A DNA stretch of 64,000 bases from Octopus sinensis (taxonomy: Eukaryota): positions 40,672,001-40,736,000 of the forward strand of contig NC_043007.1 of NCBI RefSeq assembly GCF_006345805.1, written 5' to 3'. The translations under genes were made by a program, and so were the position numbers. Each line of letters begins with the position of its first letter. Positions within the stretch are counted from its first letter, which is position 1. The notes below the pieces were generated by a model. It was not told the DNA's origin. It made no database searches and saw only the letters and a list, made by a program, of their open reading frames with translations. This document shows, piece after piece, positions 9,363 to 64,000 of the stretch.

Positions 9363-42288
<32,926 letters not shown>

Positions 42289-43808: not shown

Positions 43809-44318
43809 TACAGGTGTTGAACAAAATAATGGAAACACCTTAAAATTTTAAACAGATTTTAATGTGAAGGAGGACCGCTTTTGGCAGTAATTACACTTTG
43901 AATTCTACGAGGTGTGGACTCATACAAATTTGAATTGTTTCCAAAGGAAAGTTTGTCCATTCTTCAGCTAAAACAGTCTCCAGTTCTTGTAGTGATGATG
44001 GTGGAGGATATCGACACTTTACTTGTTTTTCTAAAATGCACCATAGATATTCAATGATATTGAGATTTGTGGACTGTGGTGCATAGATAAAATGTTCAAC
44101 TTCACTAGAATGTTCCTTGTGCCATTCAGTAACAAATTTAGCCATGTAAATTGGTGCATTATCATCCTGAAATAGTGCGTTTCCCGCTGGAAACATTTCC
44201 GCAAACATAGAATGAATTTGAACAGATAAAGTACTTAAATAGTCTTGACTATTAATTCTGCCCTGAAAGGAAACCATTAGCTCGGCGCATTTCCAAGATA
44301 TATCCCCCCCAGACCATG
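43809..44318 (-). mobile_element. 3' half of the same Tc1 family
   Basis: ORF 43891-44349: FQDDNAPIY, NLNIIEYLW; TIR caggtgttgaacaaaataatggaaacacc. Confidence 0.85.
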
Positions 44319-44790
44319 ACAGTATACAACCACTATATCGCTCCACCACCGCTCATGTCTCTCTGAGACATTTAGAAATTCAATATTTATAATTTTGGTG
44401 ATCAGTAAATAAATTTTACTGAAAATAGGATATATTTGCTGAGAAGTTGCAGTCACCTCAGCAAGCGAGGCTGCCTACCCTGGACTGATGACGAGCAATA
44501 CACTCAGAAATATATGACTTCAGGTGCTAGTCTCAGTTGGTGGAGGTGATTGCCTCCTCTTTGCAAAAATAAGGACACACAAAATGTGTCAAAGCCGACA
44601 GGAAACGTCGATGTTTCCTAGGGCTAAATGGCGGTGGTGTAATTCCCTTACGGGACTGCCACGTTGAGTTGACAGTATACAACCATTATATCGCTCCACC
44701 ACCGCTCATGTCTCTCTGAGACGTTTAGTAATTCAATATTTCTAAATATATATATATATATAATGAATATATATGTATATATGTATATGT

Positions 44791-58376: not shown

Positions 58377-59140
58377 CTACAATCACAAGATATTTACTAT
58401 TAGGAACAATGCTTAGTTAGCATATATAATTCAATAATCATGTCGTATATTTGGGAAGGTTAGAAAAGATAGAACAATGAGTTAAACTCTTTAGAAAAAA
58501 TGTCTAGTTTGTGTTCAAATGATTAAACTGCTTCTTTTCTCTCGGTTGAGCTTCTTAAAGACTCCAAGCACCAATCAAAATTTAGGTAAGGAAGTTAACT
58601 AGTTGAGACGTAACTCATTTCTATATTGGTAAAATTGTTTTGTCTTGTTTTTCAGTTTTAAATTTCAAATAGAAAAAACTCAATTATTTTCATGATATAA
58701 AATAAGGTTGGGTGTGTAAAAGACTTTATGAATTTGGGATATATTAATAAACGACCAGTTAATAATTCACCGGCACTCCGTCGGTTACGACGACGAGGGT
58801 TCCAGTTGGTCTGCTCAACGGAACAGCCTGCTCGTGAAATTAATGTGCAAGCAGCTGTGCACTCCACAGACACGGGTACCCTTTATGTATTTCTACGGGA
58901 GATTCAACATGGCAAATAATGTGAAAAGGTTGGCTCTTTAATAATTAAAATTAAAGTAAAATTTATACGGGAATTGAAATTACAGAATCATATTGATCGA
59001 TACATTACACCAACTTTAGCTTCGTGTAAATTTGAATTCTATATCTAATTTCACATTTAAGTTCTCATATCCTCCAGATACACAAACAGAGGTAGATCTC
59101 GCCATTTGAAAAGATACATTTATTACCAGTGGCTTCGTAC

Positions 59141-59261
59141 CGTAATTGTGTAGGGAAAAGTTCTGATGTATAGATGTAATCACCACCACTACCAGCATTC
59201 AGTCCAGAAACGGCCAAAAAATACAAAACAGGAATGATGCATTCCGTCATTTCACTATTCC
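59141..59261 (-). CDS. SLC22 paralog C exon 8
   Basis: NSEMTECIIPVLYFLAVSGLNAGSGGDYIYTSELFPTQL(R); 121 nt as in paralog B; donor GTACGA at the homologous position. Confidence 0.88.
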
Positions 59262-59801
59262 CTGAAAAGCATAAGATGCACTAGAAATAAAGCATTCAAA
59301 ACAATAATTAATTTAATCAAAACGAAACATAGACCACCAACAACAAAAGTAATAATACATCAGTAAAATAAATAATGAGGCATAACACAATTACTTCACC
59401 TTGTCCTATGTTCGATATTCTGCATGTGGCTAATAAATTAAATTCATTTAAAGTAATACAGAAACGTTCATGCTTCTCCACAACATTCTAATAATAAAAA
59501 TTTATTTCCTGTAAATGATCAGTTATCTAAGAGTCTCCTCGGTTTAGTAGATACAGATGTGTTTTCGATAGAAAATGCACAAAATTGATGAGAATTCAAC
59601 GAAGTAGTAAATGGTAGTTGATTTGCAACACTTAACTGTCGGCTTTGTAAGGTGAATTCTACAATTTCAGTTGTGATTCTCTCTATACGCGCTTTTGTTA
59701 CATACATACAAACACACAGATACACATACATGCATACATACATACATACATACAAACATACCTACTTACGTACATATATATATAAATACACACACACACA
59801 C

Positions 59802-59840
<39 letters not shown>

Positions 59841-59841
<1 letters not shown>

Positions 59842-60230
59842 GAGCAAAACGCCCCCCATCCAATGGACGGTGTTGAGTTGTCAAACATTTAAACCAAATT
59901 TTCTCAAACCAACTTGTCCGACCGTCCCATAGGCCTCCCCTTTGAGAAACATTGTTTTAACCTAAATTTGAGACACCAGCAAAAGAAGAAATAAAGATAT
60001 ACTTTTTTCTATTCCAAAGAATGCCTTATCGATCGCATTCTCACCTAGAATCGATTTTTGTAATTTTTGCCAAACTTATACCTGCCCTGATACCGTCGCC
60101 ATCTACATATCAAATTTGAGCGCAATCGGATGGAGGATGCCCGAGATCATAGAAGACACACACACAGACAGACAGAACGGATTTTATATAATAGACTAGC
60201 TAAAGGTGACCCGTTCTACGCGCGGGTAAG
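59841..60230 (-). mobile_element. Non-autonomous Helitron-like repeat, copy 2, joined head-to-tail to another Helitron 3' end
   Basis: Minus: hairpin acccgcgcgtagaacgggt..CTAG|TCTATTATATAAAATCC. Confidence 0.65.
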
Positions 60231-60259
60231 AGTGTGGTTGTTACTTTCTGTTGCTTTTT

Positions 60260-60572
60260 TTCAGCACGTAAAAAGCACGATCCGAACGTGGCCGATTGCA
60301 GCGCCGCCTTGACTGGCTTCTGTGCCGGTGGCACGTAAAAAGCACCAACCGATCGTGGCCGCTGCCAGCCCCCCTGGTACCTGTACCGGCGGCACGAAAA
60401 GAGCACCCACTACACTCACAGAGTGGTTTGCATTAGGAAGGTCATCCACCTGTAGAAACACTGCCAGATCAGACTGGAGCCTAGTGCAGCCTCCTGGCTT
60501 CCCAGACCCCGGTCAAACTGTCCAACCCGTGATAGCACGAAAAACGGACGTTAAACGAGGATGATGATGATG
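60260..60572 (+). mobile_element. SINE-like repeat with internal gcacgtaaaaagcac repeats and (ATG)n tail
   Basis: Three gcacgtaaaaagcac-like units; ends ggacgttaaacgaggatgatgatg. Confidence 0.55.
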
Positions 60573-60878
60573 ATTCTCCCTCTTTGTTTCTCTCTCCTTT
60601 CTCTCTCACTCTCCCACTCTGTTACTCTTCCTTTCTCTCGGACTCTCCCTTGCTTTATCTCTCTCTCTCCCATTTATAAACAACAAAAGATCTTGAGTAA
60701 GTTGAGAAATAAAATATTTAGAAAGATCAATCATAAATATCAGGCAGTAACAACGGAAAGGTCTGCTTCAAAGCAGACAGCAAAACACTAACATTTAAAA
60801 GGGACAGACGAACTTGCGAGCTGAAAAAAAGTAATAAAATATTGGAAAGCAAAGTTTGAAGGGATAGAATGTGAGGAT

Positions 60879-61126
60879 AGTAGAATCACCATGGCTGGCA
60901 TTTCTTAACGATGGACAGCAACGTATTGACAGTTTAACGGCTGGCGTAAAATTTTGAACTTGATGTAAAAGAAAATTCCTAAACAAGTTTTGAAGTGATT
61001 CTTTCTCACGACAGTAGACTCACCATGGCAAGCATTCAAAACTTCTTCATCATGGACGGCAACACATTGACGATTAAAAGGCTGGCGCAAATTTTTTAGC
61101 TTAATGTAACAGAGAATCCCTAAACA
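60879..61126 (+). repeat. Diverged 134-bp tandem duplication
   Basis: agtaga(a/c)tcaccatggc..atggac(a/g)gcaac..ggctggcg..ctaaaca at 60879 and 61013. Confidence 0.7.
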
Positions 61127-61440
61127 CCCGCTCCTTTAAATTTTAATCCCCTTCCAGCCCCATTTAGACCCCTTTTCACATTTTGGTTAATATAACCCAA
61201 TTTTATTCGGGTCTACTGGGGCCACATTTTATAAGATGAGGAATTTTGTCCTAGAGGTCACGCGTTTCATTTGAGAAAATAATTAGTTGTCATGCAAACT
61301 TGCTAGCACTTTTAACATAGGTGTGCATATTTTCAGCTCAACCGACCACATAATGCACACCTTATATATATATAAAAAATTCTTTCGTGCAAATCTGACC
61401 CTGATACATACGATACAGCTAAGGGTCAGACCCGATTCTG

Positions 61441-61887
61441 ATTGGTCAACAAGTTGATGACGTCTAGCTCAGCTAGAATGGACAGGATACAAACAGGGGA
61501 CAGTCATTAGTCAGAATATTGATGACGTCCTTTTCTGCTTGACTAGTCACCTAACAAGTACAGACAGGGGGCAGATCTAATGTAGCTATAAGTCGTGATT
61601 GGGCAGAATCTGGATGACGTCCCGTTCTGCTTGACTAACGAAGCGACTGGTCAAAACAGGAAACAAACAAGAGGCAGTTATAATGCAGCGATTGGTCAAA
61701 ATAATGATGACGTCCCGTTCTGCTTGACTAAAGCCACCTAACGAAACGATTGGTCAAAACGTTGATGACGTCACGCTACGCTGGATTGACCACCTAACAG
61801 GCATTATAAAACCGAGCACTTCACAAAACTCACTAGAACCACCCAGCGAACATCCACCATGGGTCATCACAATTGCTTAAGGTAAAA
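61441..61887 (+). promoter_or_regulatory. Pol II promoter-like cassette: 5x (ATTGG-N12-TGACGTC), TATA, Inr, Kozak ATG, splice donor
   Basis: Modules at 61441, 61506 (ATTAG), 61598, 61691 and 61749; TATAAAA 61805-61811; TCACT at 61830-61834; CCACCATGG with ATG at 61859; AAG|GTAAAA at 61881/61882. Confidence 0.7.
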
Positions 61888-62276
61888 ATGAATTCCTCGC
61901 TCTTTCGGAAACATCAATCTTCTGTATTGACCGCTTTCCACCACTTTGATCTGTTTTTTGTATTGAATACATATCGCCACCGTGGGCCACTGCATCGAAC
62001 ACTTTGAACATATAGCATGAATGAACTTACTTCAAACTATATATCAACTATACATGAACTCTAAGATGTCTGACTCCGTTGTGTATTATAAATGAATTTC
62101 TTGTGTTTGACGGCATGAGCTGTCTTTTTTTATATATAACTTTTTTTGATAAGGTTCATTTCAGGAACTGAAACATGTTATAATGTATATATAAAAATTA
62201 AAAATTGTATAATACAGCCGCATTTTCGAACTTCATTTTTTACAAATATATATATATATATATATATAAATATATA

Positions 62277-62310
<34 letters not shown>

Positions 62311-63570
62311 CATGTGTGTGTGCGTTGGAGTCCCTCTCATACGTGAGCGTTGACGCTGAATTCGACTGGTAAGCAGGTAACCTTGTGTTTGTTGAAATAG
62401 TTGTGAGCTGCTGGAGTTATTTCTCTGACGGGTAATAGGAATTTCCATATCCTCCGAGGAAACGAACTGTTGACCCAGACAATTAGAATTAATTTTAATA
62501 AAAGCATCAATTTAAGAAAAAATAATAAAGTAGTAAGAAATGAAAATTTAGCACGAAAAATTTGCAGGGTTCTTATTAAATATTAAAATGTAATAGATAC
62601 AAAAAACCTACGTTATCACCAGAACACGAACGTTTGTTGGTGTGTTCTGTTTGTATTTGCCCCATCGGCGCCTTGACAGGCAGACAATAGAATGCGATGT
62701 CGAGATTAATAATATTTGTTCTCAAGATTGTGTGGTGGTGGTGGCGATGATAATTCTCTCTATGAATGCAGACACTGAGAGATAGAAGGCCGTTTGAGGA
62801 AGTGAAAGTAATGGGAATGTAGGAAATAGAGTGAGTGAAAAAGTGCGAGGAAGACAGATACATTAAAGAACGAGAGTGGACTTGTCAAAGTGGGTTTTTG
62901 GCCCTAGCAACGACACCTTTTGAGATGGGTATTTCTAAGGTAGCCCACGGGCATCGTCACCTCATTTTACATGTCCCTGTAAATTTTGGAGTGAATCGGA
63001 CGGGATGTAGTGGCCTTCAAAGCGATCCAAGTGGTAAAAACACATTTCAGTTTTATATATAGAGATATGGATACAGACATACATATATATATATACACAT
63101 ATATATAAAGCAATAAAACGAAAAAGAGAGGGAAAACGGAAACGAGAGAGAGGGGGAGAGATGTATAATTTCTCTATATCGTATGGTTACTGGCAGATAG
63201 CATGCAGTAACATTCATTGACCTACCAATCATTCTTTTGTCATTTAGTTCGACTTAATTACAGACAGTCCCTGTAATTAATCGTAGCATATTGAATAGGC
63301 CTTGTATTATTTTTGTAATGATACCTTCTTCTGAATTCAAGGATGGAAAACTACGACAGTAGAATATCTACAACTTGTGAAAAGTTCGATATTACTGCGA
63401 TGACCAAGTAGATATTAATGCTGATATTCATTAAAACTCCATTAAAACTCATTACAAAAAATAATAAATAAAACTACAACGACAATACCACAAGGGATTA
63501 GACAACAATCAGGGAAATATAGAATAAAATGAATAAAAAAAACATATAGAATGCACATTCTAAGTATTAC

Positions 63571-63656
63571 CTGCAAATATCTTTATCATGGATGCAGAGA
63601 AAAGTGACACTGTAACAAGTGTCTTCCAGGCTTGTAGGGACATTTTGTGACCGAAC
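63571..63656 (-). CDS. SLC22 paralog C exon 7 (gene starts off the right edge)
   Basis: (R)FGHKMSLQAWKTLVTVSLFSASMIKIFA; 86 nt with the same phases as paralog B exon 7; donor GTAATA. Confidence 0.88.
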
Positions 63657-64000
63657 CTAAGAAAGAAAACCGTTTCGGCATACATATATACATACATACG
63701 TATATACGTATGTATTCATACACACACATATATGTATAGATACATACACGTATGTATATTCATGGAGCATATATGAGTGTGTGGGTGTGTGTGCGTTTAC
63801 ACGTATGTCCGTATATATGTATGCACGTATGACATTTAATAACTTTATTTACGTCAGTGTTACTTCGAATTACTTGCTACCGACTTTCACGTAATGATTA
63901 AATTATATATTATTAGCAGAAAGACCGCTCTTCGGGTGGTTCTCTTCTAGCCACTTTATAATATTTTCACATATGATTCTCGATGCAAATAATTTTTATG

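Follow-up and report, generated by a model that had tools for sequence, protein, structure and literature searches.

A CCAAT/CRE monomer array in an octopus SLC22 intron as the probable promoter-like head of an interspersed repeat

We examined a 64-kb stretch of the Octopus sinensis genome (contig NC_043007.1, positions 40,672,001 to 40,736,000 of the forward strand; hereafter "the window", whose own coordinates are used throughout) in which a promoter-like cassette lies antisense within intron 7 of a solute carrier gene, here called SLC22 paralog C. The cassette consists of five modules, each pairing an inverted CCAAT box with a cyclic AMP response element (CRE), followed by a TATA box, an initiator-like motif (Inr), an ATG in a perfect Kozak context and a splice-donor-like sequence, and it forms the 5' half of a discrete unit of ~0.87 kb. 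The comparison with a second, strongly diverged copy suggests, with a probability that we put at roughly 0.7, that the unit belongs to an interspersed or mobile repeat and that its promoter-like monomer array is the head of that repeat. A gene start and a virus find no support.

A first-pass annotation, made from the letters of the window, had drawn attention to the cassette and had offered three origins for it, namely the promoter of a transposon, that of an endogenous virus, or the first exon of an unannotated antisense gene. Here, we describe the host locus, the array and its second copy, and weigh the readings that these data allow.

Results

The host intron and its counterparts in other octopuses

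Exons of SLC22 paralog C were numbered from full-length relatives, and the cassette falls between exons 7 and 8 (Table 1), that is, antisense in intron 7, as the first-pass annotation had it. Once spliced, exons 8 and 9 (minus strand, at 59.1 and 58.3 kb) translate with 100% identity to the O. vulgaris protein P0001, annotated as 'solute carrier family 22 member 8-like', and with 82% identity to a protein of O. bimaculoides. The annotated P0001 (498 aa) is itself a chimeric gene model, with first exons from paralog C and later exons from the next tandem paralog ~20 kb downstream; the chimera spans positions 10001-74703 of the O. vulgaris locus L080 (window ~9.3-64 kb and beyond), and the O. 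bimaculoides ortholog of paralog C is a 321-aa model.

The locus L080, taken from the O. vulgaris reference chromosome OX597824.1 (assembly GCA_951406725.2), differs from the window by 1.75% over 58 kb, with ~51.4-56.0 kb unaligned. By this measure the window is O. vulgaris-like DNA, and stems from a sibling species of that complex or else from a different individual or haplotype. Identity over the cassette is 98%: none of the ten motif halves has changed, and what differences there are lie in spacers and flanks; an identity of this kind can say nothing about constraint, the substitutions being too few. A 450-bp run free of differences, covering the TATA box and the leader, was considered as a sign of constraint and rejected, since 20 longer runs occur in the 58 kb. 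The O. vulgaris reference annotation contains no gene besides SLC22 in 85 kb.

The orthologous intron of O. bimaculoides (L081) lacks a block of 3.2 kb that holds the unit together with other repeats; the sequences on its two sides (window 59633-59840 and 63073-63366) abut there at a TA/CA microsatellite.

Table 1. Features of the SLC22 paralog C intron and of the repeat unit, in window coordinates
Feature	Position	Strand	Evidence and remarks
SLC22 paralog C exon 7, upstream of the intron	63563..63658	-	tblastn of P0001 and P0005
SLC22 paralog C exon 8, downstream of the intron	59125..59277	-	tblastn
Block missing from O. bimaculoides at the orthologous intron (L081)	59840..63073	.	3.2 kb; contains the unit and other repeats
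Repeat TE1, ~350 bp, unrelated to the unit	59840..60190	.	Same-ended copies at window 18698-19008 and L086 36430-36783
Repeat TE2, with (GAT)n tail	60264..60575	+	85% identical copy in O. sinensis L085 1073-1380
Putative interspersed repeat, unclassified, one copy, body without tail, ~0.87 kb	61380..62246	+	Collinear with L086 43145-42263 (-)
Partial leading monomer, repeat-unit tail without module	61380..61435	+	By-eye match to L086 unit tails; secondary nhmmer match 61380-61501
Module 1, ATTGG-N12-TGACGTC	61441..61464	+	Pattern scan
Module 2, ATTAG-N12-TGACGTC, CCAAT core degenerate	61506..61529	+	Pattern scan
Module 3, ATTGG-N12-TGACGTC	61598..61621	+	Pattern scan
Module 4, ATTGG-N12-TGACGTC	61691..61714	+	Pattern scan
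Module 5, ATTGG-N12-TGACGTCA, sole full palindromic CRE of the five	61749..61772	+	Pattern scan
TATA box TATAAAA	61805-61811	+	Read from sequence; TATAAA kept in L086 copy
Inr-like TCACT, putative start site	61830-61834	+	Read from sequence; TTACC in L086 copy
CCACCATGG, sole copy in the window	61854-61862	+	ATG at 61859
8-codon open reading frame, MGHHNCLR and stop, behind CCACCATGG	61859..61885	+	Read from sequence; not a family feature
Splice-donor-like AAG/GTAAAA	61879-61887	+	9/9 bases identical in L086 copy
Pyrimidine-rich acceptor-like site ending in CAG	62140..62164	+	Would make a 283-nt intron with the donor
Conserved 3' domain, ending in CAAA	62126..62246	+	ATTAAA at 62197-62202; small stem-loop at 62153-62169
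Simple-repeat tail (TA)n, (TG)n, (TA)n	62247..62323	+	TRF

Five composite modules in a degenerate tandem array

The pattern ATTRG-N12-TGACGTC was scanned over the whole window and over 100 dinucleotide-preserving shuffles of it. It has exactly five matches in the window, all on the plus strand and within 61441-61772, and none in any of the 100 shuffles (0 expected by chance), which confirms the five modules with a 12-bp gap described in the first-pass annotation. The motifs are also concentrated individually: five of the seven TGACGTC sites of the window fall inside the array, as do all four occurrences of TGATGACGTC, and four of the five modules carry the flanks of an NF-Y-type CCAAT box, (S)ATTGG(T/G)CA.

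The modules start 65, 92, 93 and 58 nt apart. Each forms the core of one unit in a degenerate tandem repeat, and the 45-nt cores, when aligned, are 62-84% identical to one another. Nine columns, GATGACGTC, are invariant across the five modules, as are ATT-G and the following CA, against a mean column identity of 61%; by a hand estimate, an uninterrupted run of nine would have a chance of ~1% if the 23 invariant columns were randomly scattered. The earlier view of fixed motifs amid divergent spacers needs one qualification, that of independence: because the modules are cores of one degenerate tandem repeat, their fixed 12-nt gap has in part been inherited by duplication.

Downstream of the array, the TATA box, the Inr-like TCACT (its A lies 27 nt past the start of the TATA box), the Kozak ATG and the donor-like site all exist within one base of where they had been reported, and the unspliced frame indeed halts after 8 codons.

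A second copy in a different intron

Octopus loci were sampled via SLC22 relatives, and one of them, L086, on the same O. vulgaris chromosome and ~150 kb away, carries a second copy of the unit. With nhmmer, window 61427-62234 is collinear with L086 43134-42277 (minus strand) at E = 3.8e-18, and the alignment spans 808 of 865 positions (element positions 47-854). Searching in the other direction recovered the allelic copy of the window in L080 at E = 4e-27 and the window itself at 1.3e-22. The flanks of the window and L086 copies are non-homologous on both sides.

The L086 copy lies antisense in intron 8 (between exons 8 and 9) of the SLC22 paralog that encodes P0013, hence on the opposite side of exon 8 from the window copy. 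Because the two copies sit in different introns, either side of exon 8, tandem gene duplication cannot explain the pair. The L086 copy is part of 2.7 kb that are missing from another paralog, L087. When L086 41974-44661 is compared with L087, L089, L081 and window 58378-59125, intron 8 measures 3.1 kb in the P0013 paralog and 0.3-0.75 kb in these four paralogs or orthologs.

A discrete unit of ~865 bp, with its parts in the same order, is therefore present in two non-homologous contexts. Equal length and equal order in two unrelated contexts is the signature of an interspersed repeat.

At the 5' end of the unit, the copies begin at different monomer phases, the window keeping ~55 nt of a leading partial monomer and L086 ~25 nt as read from the alignment. 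At the 3' end lies the best conserved long stretch between the two copies, a domain of ~110 nt whose aligned part (62126-62234) is 73% identical, and ~85% identical outside one 14-nt indel; a five-pair stem within it is kept in L086 with one one-sided change. In both copies, the CAAA that ends this domain runs directly into (TA)n of at least 30 nt.

Overall, the window and L086 copies differ by ~40%, gaps included; introns of O. vulgaris and O. bimaculoides differ by ~12-18%. If the window copy was inserted after the split of these two species, the L086 copy was not its source, and further copies must exist; this argument from age collapses if O. bimaculoides lost the block.

What the two copies keep and what they lose

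The L086 copy has exactly five ATTNG-N12-TGACGT modules, all on one strand, against 0.03 expected. The 12-nt gap between ATTNG and TGACGT is thus kept in 10/10 modules of both copies, over unit lengths of 58-121 nt, and the modules are better preserved than the sequence between them: 90/120 positions are identical between window and L086 inside modules (75%) and 115/212 between modules (54%; Fisher p = 2e-4). On this point, which the first-pass annotation had left to be decided by other copies of the repeat, the motifs and their spacing come out as the better preserved part. The array shows 17 indel events, and no more than one of them, ambiguously placed, falls within a 23-nt core; P(0) is 0.003 and, by our own binomial estimate, P(one or fewer) is ~0.02, an outcome that aligners favour.

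The two halves of the module have not fared alike. The CRE half is kept in 10/10 modules; the CCAAT half reads ATTGG in 4/5 window modules and in 1/5 of those of L086, the others there being ATTCG (3) and ATTAG (1).

Among the parts that follow the array, L086 keeps TATAAA, the donor-like AAGGTAAA (9/9) with a short stretch after it, ATTAAA and the (TA)n tail. It has lost the Inr-like TCACT and the ATG, which aligns to AAG. The leader is ~56-62% identical between the copies, and the stretch of the 8-codon frame ~56%. The AG of the acceptor-like CAG (62162-62164) reads AA in L086, so splicing is not a conserved feature.

Discussion

A probable repeat with a promoter-like head

On the reading that we prefer, the window holds a copy of an unclassified, non-coding mobile unit of the O. 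vulgaris lineage, built, in order, of a monomer head, a TATA box, a short, presumably transcribed leader with the donor-like AAGGTAAA, a poorly conserved middle, the 3' domain and the tail. The head comprises about five tandem monomers of 58-121 bp, each with an inverted CCAAT box of the NF-Y type and, 12 nt downstream, a CRE GATGACGT of the ATF/CREB type. By analogy with the monomers of mouse L1 and the U3 repeats of long terminal repeats (LTRs), this array may be the element's own RNA polymerase II promoter-enhancer, and selection acting on the family, not on the host locus, may have kept the CRE cores and the gap as the surroundings drifted. The transposon option of the first-pass annotation is the one that fits, in that the promoter-like array belongs to the inherited and better conserved part of a unit with a second, diverged copy in a non-homologous context.

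How such a unit would move is a more tentative matter. The conserved 3' domain and the simple-repeat tail suggest copying via an RNA intermediate, with reverse transcriptase supplied in trans. The position of the tail directly after the most conserved domain, the differing 5' monomer phases and the A/T-rich flanks point more specifically to a non-autonomous non-LTR retroposon, an assignment to which we would give somewhat less than an even chance.

In the window, the copy most probably just rides along in the intron as a passive sequence, oriented antisense as intronic repeats usually are. If its promoter fires, the product would be a non-coding antisense RNA, ~410 nt when unspliced, that would end near ATTAAA and the tail or read on towards SLC22 exon 7. 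NF-Y and an ATF/CREB-type basic leucine zipper (bZIP) factor would recognise (S)ATTGG(T)CA and GATGACGTC, respectively; such binding in octopus is a prediction, as are inducibility and any effect on SLC22. The strong cAMP- or stress-responsive activity and the interference with the transporter gene that had been proposed for the cassette are, in the same way, purely conjectural.

Several observations weigh against this interpretation, either as a whole or in its retroposon form. Runs of at least 400 bp without differences from L080 are common, so that the cassette shows no excess constraint. Its CpG content is ordinary (observed/expected 0.82 vs 0.78 for the window), and it contains no CpG island by this measure. 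An nhmmer search covered ~410 kb of non-redundant octopus sequence, drawn entirely from SLC22 clusters, and recovered just two copies, a slender basis for speaking of a family; both lie in one SLC22 cluster, ~150 kb apart. The 117 kb from O. bimaculoides and the non-overlapping ~86 kb from O. sinensis contained none, and there was no further one in O. vulgaris L087, O. sinensis L088, or O. bimaculoides L089 and L090. The blocks that are missing elsewhere (3.2 kb in O. bimaculoides, 2.7 kb in L087) exceed the unit, contain other repeats and end in microsatellites, and a single deletion in O. bimaculoides would explain the 3.2-kb absence as well as several insertions would. Judging by the decayed CCAAT halves of L086, NF-Y binding is not a property conserved in every copy. 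The retroposon form has a weakness: an RNA begun at 61832 under the direction of the TATA box would not contain the array, and the model would need additional, purely hypothetical starts at the 5' edge; in mouse L1, transcripts driven by upstream monomers contain the downstream ones (PMC9022269). No partner long interspersed nuclear element (LINE) came to light, the 3' domain having no other nhmmer match in 476 kb, a sample too small to exclude one. No unambiguous target-site duplication could be read for either copy, the ends lying in TA-rich simple sequence.

Two further negative results narrow the type of element. Outside microsatellites, 59.7-63.3 kb contains no inverted repeats longer than 15 nt, terminal or otherwise. 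A polymerase III head was likewise not detected, ARAGORN reporting none and Rfam none at the gathering threshold or at E<=1 apart from microsatellite artefacts.

Comparison with known repeats and composite sites

The tandem monomers of ~60-200 bp at the head of mouse L1 5' untranslated regions (types A, Tf and Gf; PMC9022269, PMC11602158) offer the closest parallel to the array: in both, each monomer carries transcription factor sites, and copy number and 5' phase vary. Polymerase II promoter activity is known for L1 and would be predicted for the octopus unit. The differences are considerable, since L1 is autonomous, with ORF1 and ORF2, and the octopus unit is a non-coding 0.87 kb; L1 has YY1 sites and no TATA box, in contrast to CCAAT/CRE modules followed by TATA; and L1 ends in poly(A), the octopus unit in (TA)n.

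Non-autonomous non-LTR retroposons with LINE-type 3' ends, such as short interspersed nuclear elements (SINEs) and SVA-like elements (SINEBase, PMC3531059), share several traits with the unit: a non-coding body, 5' ends that vary, tandem repeats inside the element (compare the variable-number tandem repeat of SVA) and a conserved 3' domain that leads directly into a simple-repeat tail. Unlike SINEs, the octopus unit has no polymerase III head, is longer than is typical for them and has no partner LINE in the 476 kb searched.

The module itself resembles composite sites in which a constant distance, close to one helical turn, separates a CCAAT box from a second site. The endoplasmic reticulum (ER) stress response element (ERSE), CCAAT-N9-CCACG, is bound by NF-Y with ATF6, and ER-chaperone promoters carry several such pairs. 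In DECA-CCAAT sites, NF-Y is paired with PBX/PREP and Sp2 at a fixed gap of 11 bp (bioRxiv 10.64898/2026.02.16.706105), and in human data bZIP sites beside CCAAT/NF-Y sites show a strong positional bias genome-wide (PMC7793273). The octopus module departs from ERSE and DECA-CCAAT in three ways: its second site is GATGACGTC, an ATF/CREB-type CRE and not CCACG or a TALE-class decamer; its gap is 12 nt from ATTGG to TGACGTC, with the inverted CCAAT box first; and in the L086 copy the CCAAT half has decayed and the CRE half has not. In the literature on a CCAAT-N12-CRE rule or on this octopus family we found only general support.

Other origins of the cassette

The alternative that survives best, although unlikely, takes the unit for a solo LTR or for part of an LTR retrotransposon or endogenous retrovirus, with the array and TATA box as U3, the stretch from ~61832 to ATTAAA as R, and the CA-ending remainder as U5. 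Deltaretrovirus-type LTRs carry three CRE-containing repeats. In human LTR12 and other LTRs, the U3 contains CCAAT boxes in arrays that NF-Y binds (PMC5085097, as cited in PMC7793273). LTRs of both kinds resemble the octopus unit in that CCAAT or CRE units occur as multimers ahead of a TATA box, and they can be dispersed intronic promoters. The layout of the unit is indeed like U3-R-U5, with enhancer repeats, a TATA box 27 nt before the Inr and ATTAAA ~45 nt before the end; its length of 0.87 kb is typical of LTRs, it ends in ...ACA in the window and ...TCA in L086, and an LTR would account for the inheritance of a promoter that lies upstream of its start site. Against this stands the lack of a second LTR, of an internal region and of any gag/pol remnant, no long direct repeat being present in 60-64 kb, no reading frame above 95 aa in the block, and no Pfam domain. 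Scanning for TG...CA ends flanked by a target duplication of 4-6 bp yielded chance-level candidates only, and the homology between the copies extends, as read from the alignment, upstream of their sole shared TG. Both copies run directly into (TA)n and not into unrelated flank, and their 5' ends differ in monomer phase. The modules also combine both motifs at a fixed gap, which sets them apart from the LTR arrays named above.

A slightly less credible origin is a local duplication without transposition, by templated repair or ectopic conversion between neighbouring SLC22 paralogs, of an old host regulatory or satellite-like segment. Both copies lie in one gene cluster, ~150 kb apart and antisense in SLC22 introns, and the other ~280 kb sampled contain no copy. 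The position on opposite sides of exon 8, within non-homologous flanks, and the same CAAA-(TA)n junction at the end of both copies speak against it, and the divergence of ~40% together with the absence from O. bimaculoides fits independent insertions from different sources better.

Less plausible again is an unannotated antisense gene nested in the SLC22 intron, whether for a protein or for a long non-coding RNA, with the cassette as its genuine promoter and first exon, an origin that the first-pass annotation had put forward. Its attractions are the canonical order of core-promoter parts with the Inr 27 nt after TATA, the only CCACCATGG in 64 kb, a good donor, and the intact cassette in a second genome of O. 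vulgaris type, with motifs unchanged at 98% identity. Against the proposal stand the ATG, which is AAG in the L086 copy, and the splices: joining 61881 to the identified acceptor-like sites (62164, 62338 and 62391) leads to a stop after one to five further codons, and whichever splice is chosen the reading frame does not exceed 9 codons. Besides, the O. vulgaris annotation has only SLC22 here, the whole block is missing from O. bimaculoides, no frame of the block has a Pfam match (the Pfam scan covered 20 open reading frames and exons), and the cassette shows neither excess conservation relative to the reference nor a CpG island. An exact look-up of ten open reading frames of the block in a protein collection, and of one in a contig index, found none on record.

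The last option, a promoter left behind by an integrated DNA virus or retrovirus, is close to refuted. Multimerised CRE-containing enhancers are common in viral promoters, which is the point in its favour. The block contains no viral reading frames or domains and no LTR pair, and the unit is only 0.87 kb long and non-coding in both copies; a 15-base module pattern matched 79 IMG/VR contigs once each, as chance predicts, and a 23-nt pattern of module plus flank matched 0.

Other candidates were dropped. A DNA transposon with terminal inverted repeats, or a Helitron, for which a 5' TC and a 3' hairpin-CTRR inserted at A|T would be expected, was rejected on the lack of such repeats and on the CAAA end of both copies; a Helitron for the larger block had rested on one CTAG and a 5-bp stem and was abandoned once the 0.87-kb unit was defined; and a SINE in the strict sense would need a head derived from tRNA, 5S or 7SL RNA, which ARAGORN and Rfam did not find. 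A spliced-leader or other small RNA gene does not agree with a leader ~56-62% identical between copies and without an Rfam family. The module is not an ERSE, having TGACGTC as its second half-site at a gap of 12 nt instead of CCAAT-N9-CCACG, nor an X2-Y module of the major histocompatibility complex class II type, for which order, half-site or gap is wrong. N-myristoylation of MGHHNC was set aside, His at position 2 being disallowed by the PROSITE pattern, and SLC22's own first exon was set aside because no similar N-terminus exists among 20 relatives.

Implications for annotation and regulation

A signature that looked like a gene, with enhancer modules, TATA, Inr, Kozak ATG and donor, has turned out to be what is probably the head of a repeat. 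For the annotation of cephalopod genomes, this means that a perfect start-codon context and a donor beside a TATA box cannot be taken as a sign that a gene is present. The 12-nt geometry from CCAAT to CRE, kept in 10/10 modules despite ~40% divergence, may be read as a natural record of selection on a composite site, and makes the fixed geometry a candidate for co-operation between NF-Y and ATF/CREB in a mollusc.

How far this reaches depends on the family. Should it prove abundant and be transcribed, octopus introns would have in it a supply of dispersed inducible promoters; if there are only a few dead copies, the interest is local. A more far-reaching version, in which the unit represents an undescribed class of cephalopod retroposon that carries its own polymerase II promoter of NF-Y/ATF-CREB monomers at the fixed 12-nt spacing and, as it spreads, seeds cAMP- or stress-responsive antisense promoters into the introns of many genes, is a long shot; if it were true, octopuses would regulate some of their genes by way of this family.

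Other repeats and module-like sequences

The block that is missing from O. bimaculoides holds two smaller repeats beside the unit. TE1 has sharp, identical ends, an internal (AGAC)n run and copies that are 85-87% identical, and it adjoins (TA)n at the left edge of the block. TE2 has an internal duplication of 67 bp and a (GAT)5 tail. Upstream of the unit, at 60831-61126, a 134-bp unit occurs as a tandem duplicate of 71% identity, each copy with CACCATGG; all three CACCATGG sites of the window (60887, 61021 and 61855) lie within 1 kb and on the same strand. The 134-bp unit has no counterpart beside the L086 copy.

Elsewhere in the window, ~50.0-56.0 kb is a 6-kb stretch with a GC skew of +0.45 to +0.56 and a GC content of up to 0.55. 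Fragmented reading frames on the minus strand at 50.7-54.0 kb give weak reverse-transcriptase and GIY-YIG matches, Penelope-like and both below the Pfam cut-offs. A fragment of a mariner/Tc1-like DDE_3 transposase lies at 43891-44349 (minus strand), with inverted partial copies ~3.5 kb away at 40.3-40.75 kb (plus strand). Pieces of LINE-type reading frames with a zf-RVT match extend over 23.8-28.7 kb (minus strand), split by a long isoleucine-coding simple repeat of the ATT/ATA type, and a related piece lies on the other strand at 31.8-32.2 kb.

Finally, a 22-base module pattern has three single matches in JGI metagenomes, about as many as chance would give, on eukaryote-like contigs (L082 172-196, L083 1316-1340 and L084 3144-3168). 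Each has the full TGACGTCA(T) and no similarity beyond the module; in L083 the module stands between long inverted repeats, and L084 has a further CCAAT box and TATAAAG ~50 nt downstream.

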